Origin: Adineta vaga
Taxonomy: Eukaryota > Animalia > Rotifera
Reading direction: 5' to 3'
Length of the DNA stretch: 64,000 nt
Assembly (NCBI GenBank): GCA_021613535.1
Contig: CP075493.1
Coordinates: 4,526,001-4,590,000 of the forward strand
Made by a program: the position numbers and the translations under genes. Below the pieces are notes generated by a model. It was not told where the DNA came from, ran no database searches, and saw nothing but the letters and a program-made list of their open reading frames with translations. This document shows positions 6,356 through 29,702 of the stretch, in pieces. Each line of letters opens with the position of its first letter. Positions within the stretch are counted from its first letter, which is position 1.

Positions 6356-8098
6356 GAGTCCTTCAAAAATTTACATATAGCATAAGATGAAATCATACAT
6401 GTACCATTTTAGAACATTGACAAATTATATTTGCAGTAATTATTAAATTAACATGTCTATGAAGCATTGTGCATAAGAAAAACATATAGTCAGGTTCGTA
6501 GAACTAGCGAGTTCTTTATCTCTGCCTCTCTCGAGTATGCTTACCCTCGATTTGTCAGTTATAGTTATCTGGGTTTGTATATTCGAAGAGTCGTTGAAAA
6601 AATATAATCTATCAATTAGTTTCTATTGACAACTTTCTCAAGATTAATAATAAAGATTTATACTTTATTACGAAGAGTTTAAGAATGATGATGAAAAAGA
6701 TAATTGTAAATAGTTTTGTACAATTAAGAAAAACACCTATATCGGAAAAGTGTTAATAATAATAATATAAAAGAAAATAATTGTATAATACACGTGTGAA
6801 AGTGAAAGAAATAGAGGAGATTAGATTTTATTTGTATTTGAATAGAATAATAAAGGTAATCGATTTTTCTGATCAAAATAGTGAGGAAAAGAAAAGAAAA
6901 GAAATACGATAGATTTATTAAATTATAAATTACACATTCCCCTGTCATGGTTGAATGACGAATACAAGATCAATAGAAAAGAAATCAACGATTATTTTTG
7001 TAGCCATGAGAATGTTATTATCAACTTAGACATGTATATTTCTTAGAAAACAATTATATACATCGATTGTTATGCGACTAATTTCAATTCATTCTTTTTT
7101 TTCTAATTTCAATATTGACTTTATTTGAAGTTGAAACCATTGTTTTACATCACTTCAATGAAAATATATTTTGATTTGAATAGAATTATCATAATTAACT
7201 TTCTCAAAGTATCTTATACGAATAAAAATGAAATACGATCACTCACATGAAAATAAGAAGAATTGTCAATCGTATGTTCATTGAAATTCAATAATAAACG
7301 GTGTTTTACCTGAATGAGTGTCGATACGTAGGCAATCATGTACAATATCTATTCTTTTCTAATATGATTCTAAAGAGATCATTTCTCAACATGTTTCATG
7401 TCGTGTTTGTTAAATATTCTCAATTGTGTACTTGCGATATTCATTCATGTTGGAAAGTATCGACATATTTATCATATAGATGCTTCAATTCAACTTGATA
7501 ATTACTAAAGTAGCGTATTTCGTACTTTTGTAGAATAACTGTCTTTTTTGGTAGCAAAGCTTTATTGTATAAAACAACACAGTAACATAAAGTCAACGGA
7601 AGGTATTGTACTTATACAAAAGCTGGAGTAGAAAAAAAAAGGACACATGACGTATGTCTTTTGTCCGTGGAATATAAATAAGAACGAGAAAAGTTATATA
7701 TACTAATAGTGATTGTAGATGGGGTGACGCGTGTAAAGTCTAACAAGAATAACTGCCTGAAATATGGTTATACTAGATCAACTTTTCATCGAACAATGAT
7801 TCACTCAATGTGTACATAAAGAAATAACAAGGTACAAATAGTAGAAAACTTCAATATTCTCTTCAATGAGATTTAAAACTCGATAAATCATACAGTCTTT
7901 TCCAAAAAAGAAAAGAAAAGTATATGTTTGATTTGAATAAAAATAAGGAGTTCGTTAAAGACGATTACAAGAGTGAAAAAAATACATAGTTCGTATATCT
8001 TATAAATGCGTCATTAATGACACGATAGTAACTGAAGCATAACATTTGCGTTACCTAGACTGTCTTCATTATGAATGCAATATTTTTGATATATCACG

Positions 8099-9358
8099 AT
8101 GGGTATAGTCATGAAAGATTGGCTTCTTACACTTTATTATGAGTGAGTAAACATTCCATCGAAATGATTTGTTTTAAACTAAATTTTCTGTTTTATAGAC
8201 TGACGGGTCTATATGTTGGTGTAAAAAAACATACATTATCGCTTGATGATGATGAACATACGATATTCAGTTATTATGAAAAAGGTAAACCTATCCTTGG
8301 ACAAGCAAGTATGCTATTTATACACGGATTTTCATCGAATAAAGAAGCATGGCTTCCTGTAATGCAAGTAAAACTATTACGAATTCATTTCATTACAATA
8401 CTCTTTTATATTTTAAGTTTATTCCTGATGAATATCATTCGATTTTAATTGATTTACCACGACATGGAGAAACAGTTGATTTAAAAGAAGATCAACATAC
8501 TATTGATGAAGTTCTTGATAAATTAAAATTAGTAATAGATCTATTTTCTACTTCTAAACATAAATATGTTTTCTTCATTTAGTTTATTGATAATATGAAA
8601 CTAACTGAACCAATATATTTAATTGGAGCATCTATCGGTGGAACAATTGTTGCTCTATTTACGATTAAATATCCTGAATATATTAGTATGATCTGTTTAC
8701 TTGCACCACCTCGTAAGTAACCCTATTTATTTTGATACATCGATCGAATTCATTTGATAAATTTCATAGCTATAAAACGGTATGAAAGTGATTTAATTCG
8801 ACAAATACATTCAGGAATGGATCATATTCTTTTACCAGCAACTACGAAAGAATTTTATGATATGGTGAATTTATTAACAGTGAAGAAAGTTGATGAACCT
8901 AAAGCATTTCTTGATAAATATTTCAAATCACGATTACGTGTACGAGAACAACAGAGACAAAGTAAATTATTGAATATATTTCATTATATTCTCTTTCAAT
9001 TGAATTATTTAGTATTGCAATCATTTCTTGAATATGAATATTTTAATCTTGAACAATATTATGAACAATTAAAAACAACTCAATGTTCAGCATTGATTCT
9101 TTGGGGTCGTCAAGATCAAGTATGTGTAATTGTGAGAGAGAGAAAATGTAATGTATTTCTAATTTTCAAATTATTTAGTTATGTAAAGTTGAAGCTGCTG
9201 ATTATTTTTCCAATTTAATTTCCGATTCTCAAGTAATACTTTTTGATCAATGTGGTCATTTTATTTCCTATGAAAAACCAGAAGAAACAGCAAAAAATAT
9301 CATTGAATTCTTAGACGTGCAATCCTATGATATAGTCGAAGAGTCCACTGCATTTTAA
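8099..9358 (+). CDS. Alpha/beta hydrolase, ABHD6-like monoacylglycerol lipase, multi-exon
   Basis: FIHGFSS oxyanion motif, IDLPRHGET, nucleophile elbow GASIGG, LILWGRQDQ, CGHFISYEKPEE across GT-AG joined exons. Confidence 0.85.
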
Positions 9359-9639
9359 ATACAATTGTATATTTTTTTGTAAAACTTATTTCAGCTTATC
9401 AACTTTGTTGAATACAATCTAATCATTATTCGACAAAATCTCTTATTTCTTAATATTTATAAAATGAGTACGAATTATGCTCGAGTCTATATTGTGCTAG
9501 TTTGAACATAAGAACAAATACTTCTTGGTTTCTTTTGGATATTTATGTTTAGGATATCTGTGAATTAGTCAATTAATCTGTATTTCATATGAAGTTTGTT
9601 TTCTCGAATAAATGAACTAGAAAAAAAAGAATCTAGTTT

Positions 9640-10572
9640 TTATAATGGAGTATAAAGACGAACATATGGTTGCCAAGGAAAAGGACAGTATCGAACATCA
9701 ACATAAATGTCATATGAACGTTTTGTTCGTTCATTAATCAATCGAATCATTCGTTGATCACAATCAATAATTAATTGTATGACATCATCTGTCTCCATAT
9801 CATTTTGCCATCTACTATAATTTGTATTAGTAACACCGTGTAAATAAACATAATTATCCTTTCCCCAACCATAAAATGTGGGATTTTATACGGATGTGCG
9901 TAATCTGCTGTAGTTTGGGATATAATTCCAATAAAAATTCGACTTCTTGTTGGATCATATTGATCAAGTATAAATCGAATACGATGATTTCCCCACGAAT
10001 ATTCACCATAGGCATTTAAACTTTGATGTATGTTATGTTTTCGTCCACCCATATCATCAAATGCTTTTTCAGTCAATACAATTGTTCTTATAAATGGAAT
10101 TATAGTATCCATTTCTTCCATTTGTACTTTTTGATGTTTAATAAATAAATTTTGTAGTCGAGAAAGTTTCTCTGTCCATTGTTTTAGGTCTTTTTCAAAG
10201 TAATTTCCTTCATCTTGAGCTTTACGTAATTGTTTTGTAAGTGTTGCCAAACTTTCATCGATAGTATCAGTTTGTTCTCGATTAAGATTGAATAAATCAT
10301 GACGAATAGTATTTGCTGTTTTATGAATTTTCTCAATCGATTCTTGTTCCCATCGATCAATTTGTCCCATAATCATTCGACGATGTTCATCTGTCGAATT
10401 TTGTTTGAAACGATCATGAATATCGAGTAATTCATAGAATTGTTCGTCGAGATCATGTCGATGTTCATTTGTGTGCTGTAAACAAAATGTTTTCGAACAA
10501 CCAGGACATATAAATACACCAGCGGTTTTGCCGCATGATATACAAAATTTCTTCTGTTTTTTTGATGTCAAC
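9640..10572 (-). pseudogene. B-box + coiled-coil + SPRY/B30.2-like protein with one frameshift near 9885 (pseudogene or sequence error)
   Basis: CxxC..CxGC..FCLQH B-box; adding one A in the A4 run near 9885 restores FYGWGKDNYVY...DVIQLIIDCDQRMIRLINERT...CPFPWQPYVRL* ending at 9640. Confidence 0.75.
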
Positions 10573-12880: not shown

Positions 12881-15800
12881 TTAACATGTTTTTGTAATAA
12901 AACCAATATTACTCGTTCCAGCTAATGCAATAACTAAATCTTCCATAGAATCTCGATTAAAATCACCATATGCAATTGAATAAGGTATGGATTGATATCC
13001 AGTAGCAAAATTTGTTATTTTTCTAAAATTTCCGTTTTCATAATCTTCAAGAATACTAACTCGATTTGTACCATGATCAGTAATAATAATATCTAATTTA
13101 TTATTTCTATACATATCAAGTACAGTTATAGATGAAGGACGAGAACCCGATTCTAAATAGTAATAGGACACGTTCGAAAACGTTCCATTTTCATTTCCAA
13201 ATAGAATACCAATGGATTCATTGAGATAATTAGCAACGAGAATATCTAACCAATTGTCATGATTTAAATCGACAAGAGCAACTGAAACTGGTGAAGTACC
13301 TTTACCTGTTGAAATCGTCGTTTGATTAGTAAATGATCCATCACCAAATCCGAGAAAAATACCGATATTTTCAGCATCTGAATTAGTAACAACAAGATCC
13401 GTATATTTATCATTATTTAAATCGCCAGCAGCAACTGATTGTGGAACAGATCTATTTCCCGTTGAAAGTGTTGTTTGAACAAGAAATGGTTCACAACAAA
13501 AAGCAAGAAATACTCCAATATTCGACGTTCCATAATTAGCAACAACAATATCATCTTGTTGATCATCATTAAAGTCTCCAATAGCTAAAGATAATGGACT
13601 TGATTGATCTCCTGTTGTATACATGATTTGTAGAGCAAAAGTACCATCATTATTACCATAATATATTCGTAATGTATTCTTTTCTGAACTAGTTGTAATA
13701 ATATCTAATACAACATCATTATTGAAATCATGCGCTATTAAAGCCGATGGTTTATCAATAAATTGAATTGAATATTTGATTTCTTCGAGAAAAAATCCAT
13801 TTTTCGTAGCAAGTAAGACTCCAACTTGATTATTAATCATATTAACAATTAAAATATCTAACCAATAATCACCATTAAAATCACCAAGAGTTATCATACT
13901 TGGTGTAGTATTCAATCCAGTCGAATAATTTATTTGTCGTTCGAAACTTCCATTTAAATTTCCAAAAAATATTGTTAGACTACTTGCATTATAATTCGTT
14001 ACTGCAATATCAAGATAAGTATCATTATCGAAATCACCTTTTGCTAATGTATTTGGACTTGTACCAGATCCTGTTGAATAAATTGTTTGATTATCAAATG
14101 TACCATTACCTTGATTGAAAAATAGATGAATACTATTCGAACTACTAATCGCTAATGCAATATCCGATAAATTATCATAATTAAAATCTCCTGTAATCAT
14201 CGAAGATGGATAAGAATGATTCACATTCGAATAAATTCCAATATTTTCAAAACTTCCATTACAAAAACCAGTAAATATCGAAAAAAAACTCTGAAAAATA
14301 TTCACTGTTACAATATCTAAACATTGATCATCATCAAAATAACCACTGGCAATTAAATGTGCTTCACGAAACGAATTCGTTGAAAAGACGATTGGTGAAC
14401 GAAATGTTCCATTTCCATATCCTAGAAATACACTTCCTGTTGCTTGTCCATCTGTACTACTAACAATATCAAGATTCTTATCATTATCGAAATCATCTAC
14501 TATAACGAAAATGGGATGCGAACGAAGATCAATTGCATATGTAATTTGATTTAATAATGATGTATATTGATAACCAAGAAAGATACTAAGCGTATTTGTG
14601 CCTGAATTTGTAACGACAAGATCTGACCACGTATCATCATTGATATTTGCAATAACAATGGCAGATGGACGAGAATTACTACCAGTTGAATATGTTGTTA
14701 TCATACGAAATGTTCCATTTTGAAGTCCATAGAAAATACTAATGGAATTACCTGCAAAATTTGCAATTGCTATATCAACATTTCCATCATGATTAAAATC
14801 TCCAAGAGCAAGATCCGATGGTAAAGAATTTGCACCTGTTGAATAAGTGAGTTCATCAGAAAAACTTCCGTTTTGTGATCCAAATCGAATCTCTAATTCT
14901 TCGGTACCATAATCTACAATAGCTAAGTCAAGTTGACCGTCATGATTGAAATCGTGAACAGCAATGGCTACTGGTTGTGAAGCAGCACCTACCGTATATA
15001 CACTCGAAGTTTTCAATGCACCATAATCATAACCAAGAAGAATGGCAACATCATCAGCTAATGCATATGTAACAATAATATCCAAACGATTATCATGATT
15101 AACATTATCAATTGTTAATGCCCATGGTCCAGAATTATTTCCAGTTGAGTAAGTTTTTTGATCATCAAATGTTCCATTTGAAAAACCAAGAAAAATACCT
15201 ACATTATCATTACGATAATTTGCAACAATAATATCCGATATATTATCATTATTTAGATCATTAATCGAAATGGAATAGGGCGCTGCATAAAGATCATTTT
15301 GATACACAACTTCTCTATCAAATTTTTCATTATCACTTCCGAAATAAATCACAATATTATTACTTAAACCATATGCAATTACGAGATCAAGTTGTTTATC
15401 ATGATCTATATCTTCGATTGCGATTGACGTTGCACTTAAACCATATTTTGATGTATAAATTGTTTGATTTCGAAATGTTCCATTTTTCTGATTGAAAAAT
15501 ATACTAAAATTACTTGCAAATGAATCGACAACAATAATATCTAGATATGCATCATTATTCATATCAGCAATATCAAGAACATCAGGATTTGTAATACTAT
15601 CAATACTATATACCGTTTGATTCGTAAACGTTCCATTACAATATCCAAAAAATAATCCAATATTTTGTATATTATATTTTCCAATAACGAAATCTACACA
15701 ATGGTCATTATTAAAATCACCAATACTAATCGATCTTGGATATGATCCACTTTCGAGTGGAATCGTTTGTATTGATGAAAATGTTTCATTCGTATTTCCA

Positions 15801-17682
15801 AATAGAATTCCAATACTATCCAATTTTGAAAGAGCAATGATAATATCCAATTGTTGATCATTATTCAAATCAATTGTTCGAAGAGATGATGGTGTAGAAT
15901 GTGAACCTGTTGAATATGTTGTTTGATTGGAGAATTTTCCATTTGTTAAACCAAAGAATATTCCAATATTATCTCCTTGATTATTTCCAACAATAATATC
16001 TGTTTGATTATCATGATTAAGATCTGCTGTAACAATTGATTTTGGATTAGAAAAATCACCTGTCGAATAAGTATTATCAAGTTTAAAAACTCCTGGATCA
16101 TATCCAAGATAAATTCCGATACTATTTGTTCCATAATTAGTCACGAGAATATCTAAACGATTGTCATTATTTATATCACTTGTAATAATCGATGATGGAT
16201 ACGTAGAGAAACCATTTACATAGCTTTTTCGATTGGTAAATGTAAGATTTTTATCTCCAAGACAGACTAAAATCTTACTATTCAAATAATCAACTACAAT
16301 TATATCTAACATCATATCTTTATTTAAATCAGCAGTTATGATATATGATGGACCGTAGATACTCGTATTGAAAAGTATTTGTTGTTTTTCAAAAGTTCCT
16401 TGACCCGTACCACGAAATAAACCAAGATTTCCTGTACCAGAATTAGAAACAATAATATCCAAGTAATTGTCATCATCAAAATCTCCAACAGCAAGTGAAT
16501 ACGGACGAGATTGAAAACCAGTTGAATACATTGTTTGTTCAGAAAAAGAATTATTATGATTATTCAGTAGAACACCAATATTATTATCACCATTATTCAT
16601 AAAAACAATATCAAGATAATTATCATAATTAAAATCAGCGAGAATAGTCAAATACGGAATCGAATCGTAACCAGTAAAATATGTTGTTAACAATGAAAAA
16701 TTTCCATCACCTTGTCCAAGAAATATATCTATGCAATTAGTACCATAATTTACAATAATCAAATCTAATTTTTTATCATTATTCAAATCACCAACATCGA
16801 CTGAAAGTGGTCGTGATACACCTGTAGATATGAGTAATGAAAGTTCAAAACTTCCATTACCATCACCAATGAAAATGCCAATTGTATGCGTACCATAATT
16901 TGCAACAACAATATCCAATCGATTATCATTATTAAAATCGCCAATATCAACAGAATAGGGCGATGAACTCAAACCAGTTGAATAGTTTATTTGTGAAGCT
17001 AAAACACCCTTGCCAATGCCTAAACTAACACCTATATTATTCGTATTTGAATTTGCGACGACAACATCTAAGAATGTATCATTATTAAAATTGCCAATCG
17101 CAATTGATCGTGGATTGGAATTTTGATTTTTAAAATTAATTGGCATTGAGTGGAATTTCAATGTACATGGAAGGTCTAAAAAATACTCTAATTCGTTTTA
17201 TCAGATCTTTTCAAAATCCAATCGTCTACCTTTCTTCTTTCCCGAAGTTAAACATACGATTATGATACTAACAGTTATTGCTAAAATTGTAAATAGAATA
17301 AAACTTGAATATCCAATATATGAGAGTAATCCTGCTTGACGACATCGTCTCCTATACGTAAAAGTATCATCGTCATCAATGAAATTGACAAAACCTAAAA
17401 ATTGATCTTACCAAAGCTTTGTTCCCCAATGTTTCTTTGTTAAATTATGATGAAAAATATCAATAAGTTCATTTTCTGGTAGAGTAGGAAGTAGAGAAAA
17501 AGTTGATCGTAAACTAGATAAACCTTTTCCTCCTTGTCGTTCGTTTTCAGGAACTGGTAGTCTAACCATTGGTATCTCATTCTGAACTGTAATCACATTG
17601 TTCTATCGAGAGAAAAAAAGAACCTATCATAAGAAAGATTGTTTGTATTACATAAAATCATACTTACATTTGTAGTAGACAT
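12881..17682 (-). CDS. Type II membrane FG-GAP/VCBS-repeat protein (28 Ca-binding repeats)
   Basis: 28 D-x-N-x-D-x-x-x-D motifs in the large exon 12881-17175; upstream exons encode a TM helix (SSFILFTILAITVSIIIVCL) and MSTTN start at 17682; boundaries of the 5' exons are approximate. Confidence 0.88.
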
Positions 17683-18098: not shown

Positions 18099-19292
18099 CT
18101 ACGAATTGATTCTTACAAAACATTGAATAGTTTGTCTACAAATAGGACAAGTACGAAGAGCATATCCACATGATACACATGCACATAAATGACCACAAGG
18201 CATACAAGCTAGTTGTTTTTCTTCTGTGAGACATATTAGACATTCTCCTGTGGATTGTTTTGATGATGATGATGAAGATGAATTTTGTGATTGTAATGCT
18301 TTGGATGGAGTAATAATTTTATCTCGACAACCTTTGATATGATCGATTTGTTTTTTAAGTATTAAACATGCCATTGTTAAATCAATATCTGATGCAAAAT
18401 CATCATTTTTTACTTTAAATTGATCTTCAATACAACGTTTGATAACATTCAATTGATATTGTGATTGAAGACGTTTTACAATGGGTAAATCAAGTCTTGC
18501 TGATACGATTTGTGCAAGTTCACCAACACTAAGCTTATCTGTTTGTGGTAGTATTCGTTTTTTTGATGATTGAATTTTTCCATATAATTTTTCACCACAA
18601 AGATGTTTAGCATAGATACAATTGGGAAACCATCGTGCATGTTCAATAATTGGCTTATCATTTGGTCCCCATTTGTGTAATGAACCATTACAATAGAAAC
18701 ATGTTACAATATTATTTACGCCTGAATAGAAAAATCCAGCACGAACTAATTCGTCAACACTCGGTGCATCAGTGGGCCATGTAGTTTTTGAAAATGTCTC
18801 TTCTCGACGAGCAATGCCAGTCATAACTGGATGAACAGGTGCCAATTTTTCAATTAATGCATCATTGATGATTTTTGGCAATGATAATACAGGTGATATA
18901 GAAAGAACAAATGGACATTGTGGTGCAAGTCCAGCATGAACTGTAAATGGATCATCATAGATTGTCCATTCATGACAAATTGTATTACAATAGATACATA
19001 TGACACGATCACTGGTATTGCATGAAAACCATCCTGCATCTGCCATTGATTCCCTAGTTGGCGTTAAATGTTGCCAATGTGAAAGACTACGAATTCGTAC
19101 TTGTTTTATTGATTGTAATTCATTGAAAAAAGATTTTATTTGTGGAATAATTTCTTGTTCTTTTTCGGTAATTGTTTGTAAAACAAAATTGGATGATTTA
19201 AGTTGATTAGTTTGACATGTCGATGAACAATTATTATGAACATGTCCTTGTTTAGTAAAGTCTTCAGTTTCTATAATCTCGGTAGTGGCCAT
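18099..19292 (-). CDS. Inhibitor of apoptosis protein (BIR-BIR-RING)
   Basis: Two BIR domains (AGWF..VICIYC..W..H..CPFV; AGFFY..VTCFYC..W..EHARWFPNC) and C-terminal RING CLIC..PCGH..C..C..CPICR. Confidence 0.95.
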   Translation of the reverse strand: MATTEIIETEDFTKQGHVHNNCSSTCQTNQLKSSNFVLQTITEKEQEIIPQIKSFFNELQSIKQVRIRSLSHWQHLTPTRESMADAGWFSCNTSDRVICIYCNTICHEWTIYDDPFTVHAGLAPQCPFVLSISPVLSLPKIINDALIEKLAPVHPVMTGIARREETFSKTTWPTDAPSVDELVRAGFFYSGVNNIVTCFYCNGSLHKWGPNDKPIIEHARWFPNCIYAKHLCGEKLYGKIQSSKKRILPQTDKLSVGELAQIVSARLDLPIVKRLQSQYQLNVIKRCIEDQFKVKNDDFASDIDLTMACLILKKQIDHIKGCRDKIITPSKALQSQNSSSSSSSKQSTGECLICLTEEKQLACMPCGHLCACVSCGYALRTCPICRQTIQCFVRINS

Positions 19293-22173: not shown

Positions 22174-22598
22174 GGGCTGAAATTTTTAGAATATGTTGGG
22201 GCTATGGTGGAGAAGCTATGATAAAAATTTCAGCCCTGTATCATGATGTGGAAGGGAGATATTCACTAAACAAGGGTGAAAATAGCTCATCTGAGAACCT
22301 AAATTTCTCGGTCCCGGTTCATGGTAAATTCTTTTTTTTTTGTTAGAAAGAGCATGTCAAGCTGCGGTGCATGATGAGACTCTTTTTTTAAAAATCTCAC
22401 TAATTATTTAAAATAAAAAGAAAACAAGTTGTAGGTGTCAAAAAACCTCTGAAAATGGGGATCCAATTGTATAACTATTTTTATAAATTTCAAAACAAAG
22501 CTTAATTGAAAAAAAGGGTCTCATCATGCACCGCAGCTTGACATGCTCTTTCTAACAAAAAAAAAAAAAATTTACTATGAACCGGGACCGAGAAATTT
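22174..22598. mobile_element. Foldback/MITE-like element fragment containing two inverted-repeat pairs
   Basis: Arms of about 89 bp at 22301-22389 and 22509-22598 are near-perfect reverse complements; a 14-bp IR gggctgaaattttt / aaaaatttcagccc lies at 22174-22187 / 22223-22236; locally higher GC; no ORF of note. Confidence 0.65.
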
Positions 22599-23112
22599 GA
22601 GTTCTGCGTTCGAAAAAGTGTAAATCGAGAAAAAGTGAAAACATTTTTCTGAAGTGAATTTTTACGGTTTTCAGCGTTTTTACGCAATTTTTTGGTACAT
22701 TTGAGAAGAGTAATCAGAAACTATTCTATTTTTTTTTCTTGATATGTTTAAATAAACTTTTGTGAGGCTCGTTGAACTTCATTAATGGAGTAAATTTATA
22801 TTCCGCAACATGAACATAATAACCTTTCTTCAAATGCTCTACTAATATCGAAAACAGATTGGGTTAACCTTTTTCTATTAAAACTTATATTCATCAAAAG
22901 TATTTCGCGCCGTTACAAAAACTAAAACAGTAATTATAATTTAGAAATAATCATTTGATAAGAAAAAAGAGCGCCAAATATTAACATAACAAATGGTGGA
23001 TCGTATAATATATGTCGATCCCGCTTTATCACATTGCTTCCGAAGTTTTTCGTTGTTCAGCATTATGTTGAAAAACAAATTTTCGATTATTTTTTTTTAT
23101 ATAAAGTTATTC

Positions 23113-25824
23113 ATGACTATGAAAAAAGATCTTCATATTTACAAATGGTATGCTGATTTAATTGATAAAGAAACTGATAATGTTATTATTGTTTATCTTG
23201 GTGAACTTGAATGGAAATTTCTTAAACTTAGTTTTACAAATATTTTACAATTTCTTCGAAAACATACTTTAGTTTCACATGGAACGTTTTCAAATTATCA
23301 ACCACCGATCTTCGAAGATAAGTCATTAGTTATCAAGTCAACGAAATTATCTGGTCAATGGACAACTGAAAATGAATGTATTCGAGAAAAATTGTATGAA
23401 AATAAGAATGGATACATTCTTTGGGAATGTTTTATGCCAAGCGCAATGGCAGAGATTAAAATCGATGGAAATATAAATCAAGGTTTAGGTTATGTTGAAC
23501 GTTTGACAATGACTTTAAAACCTTGGCAAATGCCAATCAGTATTTTACGATGGGGAAGATTTTTATGTGAAAATCATTCGATTATTTGGATTCGTTGGGA
23601 AGGTGAAGAAGAAAAAGTTTTAATTTTTCATAATGGATTCAAATATCTTCATGGTATTATCAATGATGATAAGATCGAATATGGAACATATCGTTTGATA
23701 TTAGAAGAGAAATATATTCTACGTGATGGACCTTTAATTAAAACAATATTTGATGAATTTAGTTGGATTCAACAATGCTTTCCAGCTGGATTTTTAAATA
23801 TGAAAGAATGTAAATGGCAAACACAAAGTAAACTATATGAAAAGAATGATTGTGTTGCAACTGGATGGTCTATACATGAAAATGTGGATTGTAAACCAAA
23901 GATGCAATCGTTGGGAAAGATTTTCTATGGTTCATTATTTACTATTCTAATTCCATTATTATTAATCTTTTGGGCAAAGCAAACCGAACATTTTATTCAT
24001 CTACCAATTCCAACAAATTCTTTCATTGCAATTCTATTTTCTTTCTTTGGATCTATTTTAATGATTTTAGCGATGTTAGAATTATGGTATAAAGGTCATG
24101 GATTGCCAATGAATGCTTATCCACCACCAAAACTAGTCACAACTGGTGTTTATAAACTATTTCCACATCCGATTTATATTGGAAGTTCATTGATATGTTT
24201 CGGTCTATCAATGTATTATCAATCGAAAAGTGGATTTTGGTTAGTATCACCAATATTAACTTTAGCATGGCTTGCATTGGTATATGGTTATGAGAATGAA
24301 GATCTAAAAAATCGATTTCCTAAATTGACATGGAAAACCTTATTGGATTTACCAGATAATGTGAATGTGAGATGTCAATTTACAGATATTCTTTCTGCTT
24401 ATTGTTTAGTTCTAATTCCATGGTTAATTCTTTATCAACTTATTATATTTATTGGTCCTTCAGCTTATTCAATATCAACATATTTTCAATTTGAATCGAA
24501 TATTCCTGTTATTGAATGGACAGAATTGTTCTATCTTTTAGCATATCCTTTTGTCGCTTTAGTACCATTAATTATACAAACCAAACAACAAATTCGTTCT
24601 TTTATTATCGATGGTTTATTAAATATTAGTATTGGAATCTATTTACAATTCATATTACCCTTTGTTGCTGTACCTAAAGTATTTATTCCAGAAACATTTT
24701 TAGGACATATTTTATTACATGAACGTGATTTGGATGGACCTACTGGTGCTCTACCATCTTTTCATGTTTCTTGGGCATTTCTTTCTGCTTATTATTACAC
24801 AAAGACTTGTCCAAAATTTAAAGTCTTGTTTTATATTTTGTCCACTTGTATATCAACAAGTTGTGTTACTACAGGAATGCATAGTATAATTGATGTCATA
24901 GCTGGTTATATCTTATTTCTTATTTGTATTAAACGAGAATTCATATGGAATTGCATACGAAATTATTTTGAAAATTTAGCAAACTCTTGGTCAGCTTATC
25001 GAATTGGTTCGTTACGTATTATTAACAATAGTATTTACATATTTTTAAGTACATCAACAGGTTCTTTTATTCTTTTTTCACTCATCGGAAATATTTATGG
25101 AATATTCTGTATTAGTCTATCTTCATTATTTTTTGCTGGATTAGGGGGACAATTAATGGAACGTTCTTCGGGATTATCTCGACCATTTGGCTATTTTGGT
25201 TGTATCACTGGTGGTGTAATTGGATCGATTGTCGCTTCATGGTTATTCAGAATTCCCGCTATCTCACTTTTAGCAGCATATGCTTTAGCCAGTCCTTGGA
25301 TACAAGCAATTGGCCGTTTACGTTGTGTTGTACAAGGATGTTGTCATGGTCGGCCAACGAATAAGTCTCTTGGAATATTAATAACTAATCCACGTTCTCG
25401 AGTTTGTTCATTATCCCAACTACGCAATATGTATATTCATATCACACCTGCCTATTCGATTTTAGCAAATAGTTTGATCGGAATGCTTTTATGGCGACTT
25501 TGGTATTCAAATATTTCCTTATCTTTGATCATTAGTCTTTATTTCATTCTAATTGGTTTGAGTCGATTTGTTGAAGAACAATTTCGAGGTGAAATTCAAA
25601 CAATGATTTATTATCGATTGAAAATCTATCAATGGACAGCGATTATATTTGTACTGATAGGAATTTGTTTTAGTATGATTCCATTCTATGACAATATTCA
25701 TTTAAATCTTCAATGTAAATATGAATATATTATCCCGTCGATATTATTTGGACTAATTGTAGTACCTGTTATGGGTGTTGATTTTCCGGAATCAAAAAAG
25801 AAATTTTCACGTTTAACTGATTGA
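23113..25824 (+). CDS. Fusion protein: soluble beta-rich N-domain + phospholipid/isoprenylcysteine methyltransferase-like + PAP2 phosphatase + prolipoprotein diacylglyceryl transferase (Lgt)-like; bacterial type
   Basis: PEMT-like KLVTTGVYKLFPHPIYIG...YENEDLKNRF; PAP2 PSFH and SCVTTGMHSIIDVIAG; Lgt-like IGRLRCVVQGCCHGRP, HITPAYS, SRFVEEQFR; the ORF opens at 22993, probable start at 23113/23119. Confidence 0.85.
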   Translation: MTMKKDLHIYKWYADLIDKETDNVIIVYLGELEWKFLKLSFTNILQFLRKHTLVSHGTFSNYQPPIFEDKSLVIKSTKLSGQWTTENECIREKLYENKNGYILWECFMPSAMAEIKIDGNINQGLGYVERLTMTLKPWQMPISILRWGRFLCENHSIIWIRWEGEEEKVLIFHNGFKYLHGIINDDKIEYGTYRLILEEKYILRDGPLIKTIFDEFSWIQQCFPAGFLNMKECKWQTQSKLYEKNDCVATGWSIHENVDCKPKMQSLGKIFYGSLFTILIPLLLIFWAKQTEHFIHLPIPTNSFIAILFSFFGSILMILAMLELWYKGHGLPMNAYPPPKLVTTGVYKLFPHPIYIGSSLICFGLSMYYQSKSGFWLVSPILTLAWLALVYGYENEDLKNRFPKLTWKTLLDLPDNVNVRCQFTDILSAYCLVLIPWLILYQLIIFIGPSAYSISTYFQFESNIPVIEWTELFYLLAYPFVALVPLIIQTKQQIRSFIIDGLLNISIGIYLQFILPFVAVPKVFIPETFLGHILLHERDLDGPTGALPSFHVSWAFLSAYYYTKTCPKFKVLFYILSTCISTSCVTTGMHSIIDVIAGYILFLICIKREFIWNCIRNYFENLANSWSAYRIGSLRIINNSIYIFLSTSTGSFILFSLIGNIYGIFCISLSSLFFAGLGGQLMERSSGLSRPFGYFGCITGGVIGSIVASWLFRIPAISLLAAYALASPWIQAIGRLRCVVQGCCHGRPTNKSLGILITNPRSRVCSLSQLRNMYIHITPAYSILANSLIGMLLWRLWYSNISLSLIISLYFILIGLSRFVEEQFRGEIQTMIYYRLKIYQWTAIIFVLIGICFSMIPFYDNIHLNLQCKYEYIIPSILFGLIVVPVMGVDFPESKKKFSRLTD

Positions 25825-26045
25825 TTGGAATGTTTCAATGATTTGTAAGGTTTATACGGTAGAGAAAACAAGTGTCTTTGTATTTAGTCATGAATCGATA
25901 AAAAATAGAATTTAGTCATGTTCTTCATTGTTTTTATTAACATGCTAGATTAATCTCTATCAATACAATCGTAACTTGATTATTCGATGTATTACAGTTT
26001 TGTTTTTCCTATAAAAGAGTTTATGTTTTTTTTTAATAAATAAAG

Positions 26046-27162
26046 ATGAAATATGAATATACAATTATATTTTGTCGTATTTTAATTTGTCTTTTGGCTA
26101 TTTCATCAACGATAGTTCTTTCATTAATGCCAGTCTATCTACCAACACCAATTACCAAAGTAATTGTTGATAATGATTGATTTGGTGCGGCATCATTTAT
26201 TCCTGTTTTACTCTTGTTAGATGCACAAATTCAAGTGCTTGATCTTACAGTTGCCGTTGGAAACAGTTGAGTTGCTCATGTCACTTTACATGTTTTACGT
26301 TTCGTTGAATTATGTAATTTAAATATATCTGTTTATAGAGGTGCTTAATATCCAATTTTGAATACTCTATTTCGTACTGAAACATGGGAAAGAATGCATG
26401 GTGAATTGCCTTATAAAGGAGCATATGCAGAACAAAATTTAACTGCAGAAACAATCGGTTTTGATCCAACACGTATCGTTTTATCAGCCTTACCAGAAGG
26501 CCTTCCAACTAAGACGACTGTGAAGGATATGAATGCAGTTAATTTTCTTATTTTAAAAATTCATCTATATTCTGGTCAAGTCTCTATTTTAGCACTTGGA
26601 CCATTAACAAACATTGCATTAGCTATAAAAACTCAACTCAACATTTGCAAGAAATGTTAAAGAAATCTTTATACAAGGCGGTTATCTGGATGCTAATATT
26701 GCTCAAATAATTGGTTCATTATTTCAAGCAGATCCTAATTCTGATTTCAATATTCTCTTCGATCCTGAAGCATCATCATCTATGGTTCTTACTGCTCATT
26801 TTCCTTCAATTGTTCTTGTTGGTCATGCAGCACAATTAGTAACCTTCGATTCATCCTATATCGATAGTATTACTACGACAAATACTCCTTTAATAACATT
26901 GATTGCGAAATATTATCCACGTAATCTTCCGATGTGGTATGAAGCAACTACGGCGACAATTCTCTATTCAGATCTAATTACGGATGCTTTTTCAGCGTAT
27001 GCAGATATTGATATTTCATTTAGTAGTCCATTTTATGGACAAATTCATATTCGGAAAAAAGCACTTGCACCAAGCTATGTTCGAAATGTTAGTTTTATTC
27101 AATCTAGTTCGACAAGCAGTTCAACGAACCTATTAGAAGCGTATATGTTAATCTTGTTATGA
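26046..27162 (+). pseudogene. Secreted inosine-uridine-preferring nucleoside hydrolase pseudogene (fungal-like)
   Basis: Signal peptide, KVIVDND*, SVYRGA*YP, ALGPLTNIALA, QGGY, DFNILFDPEA; in-frame stops at 26178, 26268, 26346 and a frameshift near 26630. Confidence 0.85.
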
Positions 27163-27602
27163 CAATAAATTTCTATGTTTTCGAGTAGAGAGAAAAACGA
27201 CCATGTGAATGGATTTAATGTTTACTGCTCATGTTATTGCTATTGTTATTTTAGTAACTCAATTTTCTTCTTCTTCTTCTTCTTCTATTTATTGTCAAGA
27301 AAGAACATACCTTGAAAAAATCAAAGCAGAAGAAAGAGAAAGAAAGAAAAAGAGAATTCCAATTTACAGTAACATCATCTTCTATTTCTTTTCTTCTCTG
27401 TTTGCTAGACGACTGACGATTACATGTGTGAATGTGTGTGTATGCACACAGAAATTTAAAGTATTTATTCATAATAATAATTCCTTATTTTCTTCGCCTT
27501 CTAGTTCAAAGTTGAATATTATAACTAATCAAGAGAAGAAAAACAAGAACAAGAAGAAATTAATTGATCAATTTGTATTTTCTAAAGAAATTCAATGTAA
27601 TT

Positions 27603-28421
27603 ATGTCTAGTAATTCCAGTAACGCTCCACGTTTAACTATAACAAATACGTCTCTTTATCAACCAATTCATCCAAATACAATTACAACTACAACTGCAAC
27701 GATTCCAGTAACTCGTTCAACGATTAATGATTTTCGTGAAATTGTACGTGAACAATCATTTGTAACTCCAACAAATTCAGATTATAATTCTATTGATGTT
27801 CCTGTAAAAAAATTTCCACCCTTACCCGATATAACTGCATTGAATACTTCTATAAACAATGGATTCTATCGTACAGAAACAATTCTTACATCACCAAAAC
27901 AAGCACATCCGAAGAAACAAATTTTCAATCATTTCGCACCAGAACAACGCGGATACTTACCTGCATTGAATAAATCTCATATGGTATCGACAATGTCGAA
28001 AGTAATGGATCTCGATGAAGATTTACCACACTATGTAACTGATACAAAACATCGTGCGGCAACATATACATCACCCGGTGAACGTATTGTATCGCCGATA
28101 AAACGTCCATCGGCACCTATACCACCAACAAGTGCACAAATCAAACGACCTGGTCAAACTGCATTTATTAATGGTGAAGAAGACGAACAAGATGATGATT
28201 ATTGTTCAGGTGCAGAAGATGATGATAGTCAATTATTTGACGAACATTTTCGTTCATATCAACAACCGATTATCATGAATAATCGGCGAATAGATCATTA
28301 CAGTAATAAAAGTCGTCTTCAACATACAACAAGTAAACATCCGACTATAGTGGTTAATGATGATGATCATGATGATGGTGCTCATCCAATGGATTCAATT
28401 GATTTTGAACCATTTAATTAA
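27603..28421 (+). CDS. Unknown, probably disordered protein (Thr/Pro-rich with acidic tract)
   Basis: Long open frame with coding-like codon usage; AATAAA downstream. Confidence 0.6.
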   Translation: MSSNSSNAPRLTITNTSLYQPIHPNTITTTTATIPVTRSTINDFREIVREQSFVTPTNSDYNSIDVPVKKFPPLPDITALNTSINNGFYRTETILTSPKQAHPKKQIFNHFAPEQRGYLPALNKSHMVSTMSKVMDLDEDLPHYVTDTKHRAATYTSPGERIVSPIKRPSAPIPPTSAQIKRPGQTAFINGEEDEQDDDYCSGAEDDDSQLFDEHFRSYQQPIIMNNRRIDHYSNKSRLQHTTSKHPTIVVNDDDHDDGAHPMDSIDFEPFN

Positions 28422-28679: not shown

Positions 28680-29702
28680 ATGAATTGTATTATCGTACCT
28701 CTATCTGTAATTACATTCCATGTATTATTCTTAGTTGGAGAAACGAAAAGTTCAGCTTCACTTGGTCTTATCGGTGATGCGACGGATGTAATACGACCAA
28801 CATCAGGAGGTACAGTTCTCGTTGGTGGTGGTCCTGATGTTGATGCAGCAATGCAATGGATGATCAATAAATCAGGTGGTGGTGATTTTGTCGTACTTCG
28901 AGCGACTGGTACCGATGCTTACAATAGTTATATCTACAATTTAGGTTCGGTTAATTCCGTTGAAACTTTATTAATTGATTCACGCACGTTAGCAAATGAT
29001 CTTCAAGTAGAAGCAACGATTCTAGGAGCTGAAGCTGTGTTTATTACAGGTGGAAATCAAGCAAATTATGTTAATTATTGGAAAGATACGAAAATAGAGG
29101 ATGCACTTAATTATCTTCGAAATACTAAAAAAATACCTATAGGTGGTACATCGGCAGGTTGTGCTATTCTCGGTGGAACTTATTTTCCTGCTCTCTACGG
29201 TACACTGACAACGAATGATGCTCTTGATAATCCTTACAATCGATATCTGACTTTGGGTCATAATGATTTTCTCAATCAACCTTATCTAATAAATGTTATT
29301 ACGGATACTCATTTCAATAATCCAGATCGACGTGGTCGCCTCATAACATTTCTAGCACGTATGAATCAAGATTACGGAATTGTTGGTCGTGGCATTGGTG
29401 TTGATGAATCAACAGCTGTCTGTATTGAATCTAATGGTACTGGTCGTATATTTGGTACAGGTACTGCTTTTTTCCTAAGTCAAAATGGACCTGCCTACAA
29501 GCCAGAAGTATGTACTAATACTTCTCGTCTCGATTGGTATCGTCATCGGCAAGCGGTAACAGCATATAAAATTATTGGTAATAAAGATGGATCAGAAAGT
29601 TTTGATTTAAAAACATGGAGTCAAGTGAATAGCAAAATACATCAATATTATTATGTAAATCGTGGTGTTTTGGGCTTTTTTTTAGGGGAAAAAAAGAGTT
29701 GA
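28680..29702 (+). CDS. cphB: Cyanophycinase-like peptidase S51, bacterial type, probably secreted
   Basis: LVGGG, AEAVFITGGNQANY, catalytic GGTSAG, ITDTHF..DRRGRL, GIGVDESTA; hydrophobic N-terminus; intronless. Confidence 0.85.
   Translation: MNCIIVPLSVITFHVLFLVGETKSSASLGLIGDATDVIRPTSGGTVLVGGGPDVDAAMQWMINKSGGGDFVVLRATGTDAYNSYIYNLGSVNSVETLLIDSRTLANDLQVEATILGAEAVFITGGNQANYVNYWKDTKIEDALNYLRNTKKIPIGGTSAGCAILGGTYFPALYGTLTTNDALDNPYNRYLTLGHNDFLNQPYLINVITDTHFNNPDRRGRLITFLARMNQDYGIVGRGIGVDESTAVCIESNGTGRIFGTGTAFFLSQNGPAYKPEVCTNTSRLDWYRHRQAVTAYKIIGNKDGSESFDLKTWSQVNSKIHQYYYVNRGVLGFFLGEKKS

Follow-up and report, generated by a model that had tools for sequence, protein, structure and literature searches.

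A bacterial two-gene cassette with a divergent Lgt-like module fused into one gene in the bdelloid rotifer Adineta vaga

How does an animal genome come to hold a soluble barrel and three bacterial-type lipid-enzyme modules in a single uninterrupted open reading frame (ORF), and what might such a protein do? These questions are raised by a gene found in Adineta vaga, a bdelloid rotifer, and located in a 64,000-nucleotide stretch of contig CP075493.1 (positions 4,526,001 to 4,590,000 of assembly GCA_021613535.1), which is referred to as the window. The assembly comprises 100.8 Mb in 6 contigs, and the window is placed 4.53 Mb into the first of these, which measures 18.1 Mb. The gene encodes a double β-barrel followed by PEMT/ICMT-like, PAP2_3 and Lgt-like membrane modules, and it goes back to a single acquisition from Bacteroidota (Cytophagales-like) of two adjacent genes, whose intervening stop codon and short spacer were subsequently lost in the rotifer lineage to give one protein of 903 residues. 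The best explanation as a whole, in which this protein is a membrane-lipid tailoring enzyme, is given a probability of about 0.8; its evolutionary and anatomical part can be regarded as highly likely, and the specific mechanism is put forward tentatively.

Two bacterial genes in one rotifer reading frame

The open frame on the forward strand extends without interruption over positions 22993-25824 (943 amino acids). Read from the ATG at 23113, the product has 903 residues and agrees in length with the orthologues from Rotaria and Adineta, which it matches end to end (903-904 residues, 100% coverage). These orthologues are full length and 68-75% identical, and the named eukaryotic homologues are all bdelloid, namely Rotaria sordida, R. 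socialis, R. sp. Silwood1, Adineta ricciae and A. steineri, with the gene conserved between families of bdelloids. The motifs quoted in a previous sequence-only reading of the locus (KWYADL, GLGYVERL, LRWGRF, GRLRC..QGCCHG and HITPAY) were all found in the ORF, and the four modules which it had placed in one intronless frame correspond to three Pfam matches above cut-off and an N-terminal barrel predicted to be all-β.

The two parts of the protein have separate counterparts in bacteria. Residues ~265-903 match hundreds of bacterial PEMT-PAP2_3-LGT proteins of ~640 residues with 40-53% identity, and the N-terminal part matches stand-alone bacterial 'hypothetical proteins' of ~262 residues with up to 49-52% identity, often encoded on contigs that also carry the three-module gene. 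An exhaustive search by HMMER with the N-terminal part returned 859 cluster representatives, nearly all of ~260 residues. On two bacterial contigs, the stop codon of the barrel gene is located 9 or 50 nt ahead of the three-module gene on the same strand. The earlier description of the locus as an 'operon in one ORF' is thus literally true, but the operon consisted of two genes instead of four, as the three membrane modules were already joined in one bacterial gene of ~640 codons.

A genome scan with one genome per bacterial species uncovered relatives in at least 521 bacterial genomes, distributed over Bacteroidota, Acidobacteriota, Gemmatimonadota, Myxococcota, Planctomycetota, Ignavibacteriota, Zixibacteria and other phyla, and 80 loci were fetched. 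In 74 of them, from many phyla, the barrel gene is located immediately upstream on the same strand, the distance from its stop codon to the first residue aligned in the following gene being 3-181 nt (mostly <50), often with an overlap of the two frames. The barrel gene is 1.5 kb away in one further locus and was not seen in the other five, two of which are at contig ends. None of the 80 bacterial loci features a barrel/membrane fusion. When all other ORFs in these loci were clustered, no further conserved neighbour was found, the next-best cluster occurring in 7 of 80, so the genomic context gives no functional clue and the unit is a self-contained two-gene cassette. An ATP-grasp (R2K) gene upstream in one locus (L001) was considered as a cassette part and rejected, since it is not conserved among the 80 loci. 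The PADLOC models of defence systems matched neither the rotifer protein nor either bacterial protein, and a literature search on the domain combination or on bdelloid Lgt found no paper on the gene family.

The bacterial origin proposed for the ORF was upheld by the phylogeny of both halves, each nesting among Cytophagales-like Bacteroidota. For the membrane part, maximum likelihood unites the 17 rotifer-type sequences in a single clade (Shimodaira-Hasegawa-like approximate likelihood ratio test, SH-aLRT, 100), which is nested (99) with Hymenobacter, Bernardetiaceae and metagenomic Bacteroidota proteins (P0023-P0026). The 17 sequences are one clade (96) in the barrel tree as well, grouping (97) there with P0123 and P0124. 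The nearest bacterial rows, P0024 for the membrane part and P0124 for the barrel, come from one Bacteroidota-type contig of 610 kb, on which P0124 is encoded next to P0024 on its upstream side. The identity of the closest bacterial relatives of both halves points to a single capture of two adjacent genes.

The junction retains a trace of the former gene boundary. The rotifer sequence ...HENVDC-KPK-MQSLGK aligns with a bacterial ...HEKVEWM followed by a stop codon and then by MKDITGK, the start of the downstream gene. The relic start methionine, M264, is kept in this genome and in the Rotaria socialis protein P0007, and has become I or R in other rotifer sequences. In the locus of a Hymenobacter sp. 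metagenome-assembled genome (L003), the two genes share one frame with a stop codon and 9 nt between them, so that the loss of one stop codon would suffice for fusion.

Integration in place of contamination was indicated by the host-like GC content, the position within an 18-Mb contig, the orthologues in at least five named bdelloid species and the transcript-like contigs described below. The ORF has a GC content of 30.3% (17.7% at third codon positions, GC3), to be compared with 30.2% for the whole window and 50-68% for the closest bacterial cassettes.

A fusion also arose in bacteria, independently of the rotifer one. The gene-dense metagenome contig L009 (positions 7218-10565) encodes a fused protein of 854 residues (P0326) with barrel, PEMT and LGT-like modules, in which PAP2_3 was not detected, and which is sister to Minicystis rosea in the tree. 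A PAP2_3-like gene of 236 codons adjoins it in divergent orientation, as if the PAP2 module had split off, suggesting that the modules are functionally linked. The independent fusions speak for a joint action of the barrel protein and the membrane enzyme, and the rotifer gene serves as a natural 'Rosetta stone' in this respect. Another candidate, the 931-residue, high-GC 'fused' protein P0062, was rejected as a bacterial fusion since genes broken into fragments abound on its contig, suggestive of frameshift errors.

Table 1. Positions in the window of the fused gene, its parts and the neighbouring features
Feature	Residues	Positions	Strand	Remarks
Whole gene, protein P0001		23113-25824	+	903 codons and stop; intronless; single copy in the assembly
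Module 1, soluble double β-barrel	1-259	23113-23889	+	AttH/CrtC/25-phosphosteroid-lyase/Diels-Alderase fold (predicted)
Fusion junction	C260-K263 (linker) and M264	23890-23904	+	M264, relic start codon of the downstream bacterial gene
Module 2, PEMT/ICMT-like membrane methyltransferase	264-420	23902-24372	+	Pfam PEMT and motif
Module 3, PAP2_3 (Aur1/sphingomyelin-synthase-like)	423-606	24379-24930	+	Pfam, structure and conserved columns
Module 4, Lgt-like	607-903	24931-25821	+	Amphipathic helix and hairpin, 7-transmembrane Lgt fold, extra eighth transmembrane helix, C-terminal tail
Divergent Lgt signature, G-R-L-R-C-V-V-Q-G-C-C-H-G	734-746	25312-25350	+	Invariant as GRxRCxxQGCCHG in 113 aligned sequences
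Putative 3' untranslated region		25825-26064	+	AATAAA signals at 26035-26044; contig ends only suggestive of RNA end
Inhibitor-of-apoptosis gene		18099-19292	-	Single ORF, 397 aa; two BIR and one C3HC4 RING; 4 kb upstream of the fused gene
FG-GAP repeat ORF		12881-17161	-	1,426 aa; uninterrupted, intronless
Nucleoside hydrolase-like sequence		26160-27015	+	Directly downstream of the fused gene
Peptidase_S51 ORF		28680-29702	+	340 aa

The four modules and their predicted membrane orientation

The modules were checked with the curated cut-offs of Pfam, with AlphaFold2 models and with structure comparison by Foldseek and VIA-align. The full-length model has a predicted local distance difference test (pLDDT) score of 89.4 and a predicted template modelling score of 0.79. 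The separate search of each module that the sequence-only reading had suggested recovered PEMT, PAP2_3 and LGT by hidden Markov models (HMMs) of Pfam, and the Lgt, Aur1/SMSr and AttH/CrtC folds by structure.

The N-terminal 264 residues, described beforehand as a soluble β-type domain, are predicted by AlphaFold2 to form an all-β double barrel (pLDDT 93.9). Against AttH/CrtC-type structures, VIA-align gave Z scores of 17.5-21 with 228-241 residues aligned, and Foldseek gave E-values down to 1e-9 with a probability of 1.00. The structural matches include the fungal Diels-Alderases Fsa2, CghA and Phm7, AttH, 25-phosphosteroid lyase and kievitone hydratase. Proteins with this fold either carry hydrophobic ligands or act on them by hydration, elimination or cyclisation. 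In the ESM Atlas, unannotated bacterial clusters resemble the barrel with TM-scores of 0.90-0.91, and some clusters of the same fold carry CrtC Pfam matches. The rotifer barrel itself matched nothing in Pfam (including CrtC, Lipocalin_9 and Svf1) at E <= 10, and among 73 members of the barrel family the CrtC, AttH and Svf1 HMMs gave nothing at E <= 1 and Pfam gave nothing relevant.

The homologue of the barrel is the stand-alone bacterial protein of ~262 residues, and it has no signal peptide, as the homologues begin at the first strand. The invariant polar residues of the family are K11, Y13, D15, Y127, R149, E232, K234 and E256. In a Myxococcota cluster of the ESM Atlas, 778-residue proteins carry a similar barrel (TM-score 0.81) fused to CDP-alcohol phosphatidyltransferase and GtrA-like transmembrane domains, which constitutes a second recurrent pairing of the barrel fold with phospholipid head-group enzymes.

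Module 2 is a putative membrane methyltransferase. Pfam PEMT matches residues 305-391 with 33-37 bits (cut-off 25), and the ICMT model scores 16.8, under its cut-off of 24. The conserved pattern for binding of S-adenosylmethionine (SAM) is H352-P353-x-Y355-x-G357, followed by the invariant E394. The Arg that presumably precedes HP in ICMT-type motifs is absent. No ICMT or PEMT structure is among the structural matches listed for the full-length model.

For module 3, Pfam PAP2_3 matches residues 471-606 with 48.7 bits (cut-off 27), and the general PAP2 model scores 25.3, under its cut-off of 27.2. Model residues ~409-608 match inositol phosphorylceramide synthase/Aur1 (9vj4 and 9ivc, Z 13.0-13.4), SMSr (8ijq, Z 12.8) and PgpB (Z 11.1). 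PAP2 enzymes are defined by a catalytic His in motif C2 and a His-x3-Asp in motif C3, and the phosphatases have in addition a C1 motif, K-x6-R-P, and an arginine (S-R) in C3. The catalytic set of module 3, P548-S-F-H551 (C2) and H590-x3-D594 (C3), is invariant or nearly so; the phosphatase C1 K-x6-R-P is absent, and the position of the C3 Arg is taken by the invariant C584. The module looks more like a head-group phosphotransferase of the Aur1/sphingomyelin synthase (SMS) type than like a phosphatase.

Module 4 has the fold of Lgt with a deviating active-site region. Pfam LGT matches residues 698-854 with 63-67 bits (cut-off 24.9), covering profile positions 86-238 only, and the module scores 50 bits with the NCBIfam Lgt equivalog model, whose cut-off is 334 bits. 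E. coli Lgt (5azb) superposes on model residues 616-861 with a Z of 16.6 and a root-mean-square deviation of 3.7 over 229 aligned residues. A single-sequence search of the Lgt-like part against the PDB sequences found nothing, and the alignment to 5azb (E-value 8.5e-6) required a profile built from 45 family members. An ESM Atlas feature search with the same part returned generic Lgt-family clusters only (score 0.89-0.90). The C-terminal tail is conserved as DFPxS..RFSRL.

The signature of E. coli Lgt reads G142RLGNFINGELWG154 (PMC4728403). Among the residues of the E. coli enzyme, R143, R239 and E243 are kept as R735, R818 and E822, all invariant in 113 sequences, and G154 and R246 are kept as G746 and R825. 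H103 is replaced by F in the rotifer and by Y in the consensus, within RPFGY(F/Y)G; G145, N146 and E151 are replaced by the invariant R737, C738 and C743, and L152-W153 by C744-H745. In E. coli, activity is lost in the mutants H103A/N/Q/R/Y, G145A/I/V and E151A/Q, H103GGL has been proposed as the site for the lipobox peptide, and E151 is part of the first phosphatidylglycerol site (PMC4728403). The earlier suggestion that the divergent motifs point to a different acceptor is strengthened by these replacements, which include positions whose mutation inactivates E. coli Lgt. A separate canonical full-length Lgt (195-247 bits) is encoded in four cassette-bearing bacteria, and a search of the rotifer genome for a second LGT-like sequence found none besides the fused gene.

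Orientation in the membrane was predicted with the positive-inside rule from the helices of the model and from the mean number of Lys and Arg (K+R) per segment in ~96 bacterial sequences of the alignment. Over the 18 predicted helices, high and low counts alternate without exception. High counts, predicted to lie inside, are found in the SAM-motif loop (2.6), the loop after the methyltransferase (4.3), the amphipathic linker before the Lgt fold (6.2), the RPFG loop (1.4), the signature and head loop (7.0, with 1.5 Asp and Glu), the RFVEE loop (3.5) and the C-terminal tail (3.1). The intervening loops, including the last PAP2 motif loop, have 0-0.5 and are predicted to lie outside, as are loop L5 (1.2) and the C2-motif loop L7 (2.5), both with an acidic excess. 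In the simplest reading of these counts, the barrel, the methyltransferase site and the Lgt-like site would face the cytoplasm and the PAP2_3 site the opposite, outer side. PAP2 sites usually face outward. The head domain of E. coli Lgt is negatively charged and periplasmic (PMC4728403), and the Lgt-like module, with its positive head loop predicted to be cytoplasmic, appears inverted.

Proposed function and competing explanations

The protein is proposed to be a membrane-lipid tailoring enzyme that takes no part in lipoprotein maturation. At the cytoplasmic face, the barrel would bind, and perhaps chemically activate, a hydrophobic substrate (a lipid or an isoprenoid) and hand it to two membrane sites facing the cytoplasm, the SAM-dependent methyltransferase and the inverted Lgt-fold module. 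The latter probably still uses a phosphatidyl-type donor, as the Arg/Arg/Glu set that binds the phosphate of phosphatidylglycerol is kept. The invariant Arg/Cys/Cys-Cys-His cluster may form its acceptor site, possibly as a metal-binding or covalent-thiol centre, with an acceptor other than a protein or with a covalent intermediate. The His-His-Asp module of the Aur1/SMS type would carry out phosphoryl head-group transfer on the other, exoplasmic leaflet, and the product is probably an unusual polar lipid. This specific order of events, from the barrel to the methyltransferase and the Lgt-fold transferase with PAP2_3 outside, is offered as a tentative scheme. The sequence-only reading had pictured the modules as an assembly line that would methylate, dephosphorylate and then transfer a lipid; the phosphotransferase-like PAP2 module is predicted to have its site on the membrane face opposite to that of the other three modules.

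A bolder and rather speculative version regards module 4 as a new branch of the Lgt superfamily, inverted to face the cytoplasm and with a Cys/Cys-Cys-His centre (metal or covalent thiol), which would take a diacylglyceryl or related group from a phosphatidyl donor and pass it on to an acceptor other than a protein, brought in by the barrel, with methylation and head-group phosphotransfer in the same polypeptide. If true, an undescribed lipid class would be made by hundreds of bacterial species and, via transfer, by bdelloid rotifers.

The main alternative to the favoured mechanism, itself unlikely, is an isoprenoid or carotenoid tailoring unit, in which the barrel, as a hydratase or lyase similar to CrtC, would attack an isoprenoid's terminal double bond or a tertiary phosphate, and its product would then be methylated and phospho-modified by the membrane modules. 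The solved relatives of the barrel, with kievitone hydratase, 25-phosphosteroid lyase and AttH/CrtC-type proteins among them, and the CrtC matches of some same-fold ESM Atlas clusters agree with such chemistry, the eight invariant polar residues suggest catalysis over passive carriage, and many hosts are pigmented and rich in isoprenoids (Hymenobacter, Bernardetiaceae, Minicystis rosea). However, none of the 73 family members matches the CrtC, AttH or Svf1 HMMs, carotenoid or isoprenoid genes are not linked to the cassette in the 80 loci, and chemistry on glycerolipids or sphingolipids is what the PAP2_3 and Lgt folds suggest.

Whether the fused gene is in use at all was addressed with contigs, not reads, of four runs from three studies, which were guessed, not recorded, to be RNA and were placed on positions 22400-28300. 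The contigs cover 23302-26064 and a downstream exon from ~27503, and cover nothing in 22400-23187 or 26143-27324. Three transcript-like contigs bridge the fusion junction, with no joints or indels inside the ORF, and the contigs end at 26064, 20 nt past AATAAATAAA at 26035-26044. Coverage of the ORF and the 3' untranslated region, and not of the flanks, is the pattern expected of transcripts, and transcription of the fused gene is likely, not proven. Among 18 single-base differences inside the ORF, 9 are synonymous and 9 non-synonymous, where 21% synonymous would be expected by chance (p = 0.007 in a weak test). The alignment of 113 rotifer and bacterial proteins has 45 invariant columns, and the A. 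vaga protein retains each of them.

These data bear on the idea of a decaying, functionless relic of the transfer, a pseudogene not yet disrupted, which is improbable. Many foreign genes of bdelloids are of uncertain use, the apparent expression is low (depth 2-6 in the contigs guessed to be RNA), half of the variants are non-synonymous and only one copy is present in the assembly. Against this, a 2.7-kb ORF has stayed intact at 30% GC, where stop codons arise easily, no contig shows an indel within it, the synonymous excess is present, and full length is kept at 57-77% identity across deep rotifer-type lineages with every invariant column retained.

That module 4 is a working prolipoprotein diacylglyceryl transferase, giving the rotifer a bacterial-type protein lipidation, is very improbable. 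It does match Pfam LGT above cut-off, has the whole Lgt fold and retains the equivalents of R143, R239, E243 and G154, but H103, G145, N146 and E151 are replaced, the E. coli mutants H103Y, E151A/Q and G145A/I/V are inactive (PMC4728403), the equivalog score is far below its cut-off, the basic head loop predicts a cytoplasmic site in place of the negative, periplasmic head of Lgt, and cassette-bearing bacteria keep a separate canonical Lgt. Bacterial contamination or mis-assembly, for which the clearly bacterial type of the protein and the lack of introns could be cited, is scarcely credible for an ORF that lies 4.5 Mb into an 18-Mb contig of a six-contig assembly, has the base composition of its host window, recurs as the same fused gene of 903-904 codons in independent assemblies of five named bdelloids and in none of the sampled bacterial loci, has an AATAAA signal 20 nt ahead of the transcript-like contig ends, and lies 4 kb from a BIR/RING inhibitor-of-apoptosis gene, which gives it a metazoan context.

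Several points weigh against the favoured reading of a captured, fused and expressed membrane-lipid tailoring enzyme. No family member has a described substrate, product or activity, and the metal or covalent role of the Cys/His cluster is conjectural. Hydratases, lyases, Diels-Alderases and lipid carriers resemble the barrel to about the same degree (Z 17.5-21), so that it may be a catalyst or a carrier. The methyltransferase assignment draws on a Pfam match and a motif, and the topology on charge statistics and the helices of a predicted model. The RNA status of the runs is a guess, their contigs give neither strand nor level, and the polymorphism test is limited by its size (n = 18) and low-depth contigs. 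As for the fusion, it might have arisen not in the rotifer but in a bacterial donor outside the sample. In addition, a fused protein of 874 residues (P0200, at positions 836-3460 of L008), with barrel, PEMT and LGT-like modules and no detected PAP2_3, groups near the rotifer clade on a long branch; it is encoded on an AT-rich (24-30% GC), gene-poor contig of 5.5 kb from a public run, and could be a divergent rotifer paralogue or come from another eukaryote.

The neighbourhood of the fused gene holds further features (Table 1). FG-GAP/FG-GAP_3 repeats (23 stretches, E 2e-147) fill nearly all of the large intronless ORF on the reverse strand, which may be another foreign-looking gene near the cassette. 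The inosine-uridine nucleoside hydrolase-like sequence matches its family in two pieces with in-frame stop codons, two TGA and one TAA in the first piece and one TAA in the second, is not covered by the transcript-like contigs, and could be a short-intron gene or a pseudogene; at least seven other copies, mostly intact, are present in the genome. The Peptidase_S51 domain (dipeptidase E/cyanophycinase-type) belongs to a mainly bacterial family, and its ORF may likewise have been acquired, close to the fused gene.

For evolution, the locus provides a clean example of how a bacterial operon became one eukaryotic gene. The scar can still be read, and the loss of one stop codon solves the expression of two cistrons in an animal. 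For biochemistry, it draws attention to a conserved two-gene cassette, present in more than 500 bacterial species of many phyla and without a described function, whose Lgt-like module breaks the defining rules of Lgt and probably works on the opposite side of the membrane. Once identified, the product could turn out to be a new membrane lipid, and the Lgt fold to have a new use. For the rotifers, the gene would add a membrane-lipid trait to the foreign functions long kept by bdelloids. Transfer into bdelloids is already known, and this is one more case of it; the weld of two cistrons, the cassette with no described function and the deviant Lgt fold are less ordinary.

Comparison with known systems

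Proteins of the AttH/CrtC fold, including CrtC, kievitone hydratase, 25-phosphosteroid lyase and Fsa2/CghA/Phm7, share the double barrel predicted for module 1, and each of them has a hydrophobic ligand, a lipid or an isoprenoid, which it acts on or carries. The rotifer barrel differs from them in its size (~260 residues against 320-380), in an identity of 6-10% and in the lack of an HMM match to those families. Unlike these relatives, it has its own set of invariant residues and an obligate pairing with a membrane protein. A functional analogue, distantly similar, is the tandem-lipocalin Svf1 of yeast, which binds ceramide and supports its delivery towards complex-sphingolipid synthesis, feeding Aur1 (PMC10038888). 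A ceramide carrier that feeds Aur1 parallels a barrel beside a PAP2_3 module, by analogy only.

Module 2 has in common with the PEMT/ICMT (Ste14) family (PF04191/PF04140) the HPxYxG motif and the downstream invariant Glu. Aur1 and SMSr of the PAP2_3 family (9vj4, 9ivc and 8ijq) are the best structural matches of module 3, and the His-His-Asp triad (H551, H590 and D594) is shared. In contrast to them, module 3 (11-17% identity) has a Cys (C584) at the position of the C3 arginine and sits between two other catalytic modules.

With E. coli Lgt (5azb; PF01790), module 4 shares the 7-transmembrane fold, the Arg/Arg/Glu set for the phosphate of phosphatidylglycerol (R143, R239 and E243), R246 and G154. 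It differs in the replacement of H103 of HGGL, G145, N146 and E151 by F/Y, R, C and C, with an added Cys-His, and also in its extra eighth transmembrane helix, conserved tail, positive head loop and constant fusion to PEMT and PAP2_3 modules.

Horizontally acquired genes of bdelloid rotifers are well documented (PMC3499245, PMC4632278 and PMC11258130). Such genes are of bacterial origin, intronless, host-like in composition and expressed, and the fused gene fits this description, its own expression being apparent only. Unlike the usual foreign genes of bdelloids, it derives from two adjacent bacterial cistrons that were captured together and welded into one ORF.

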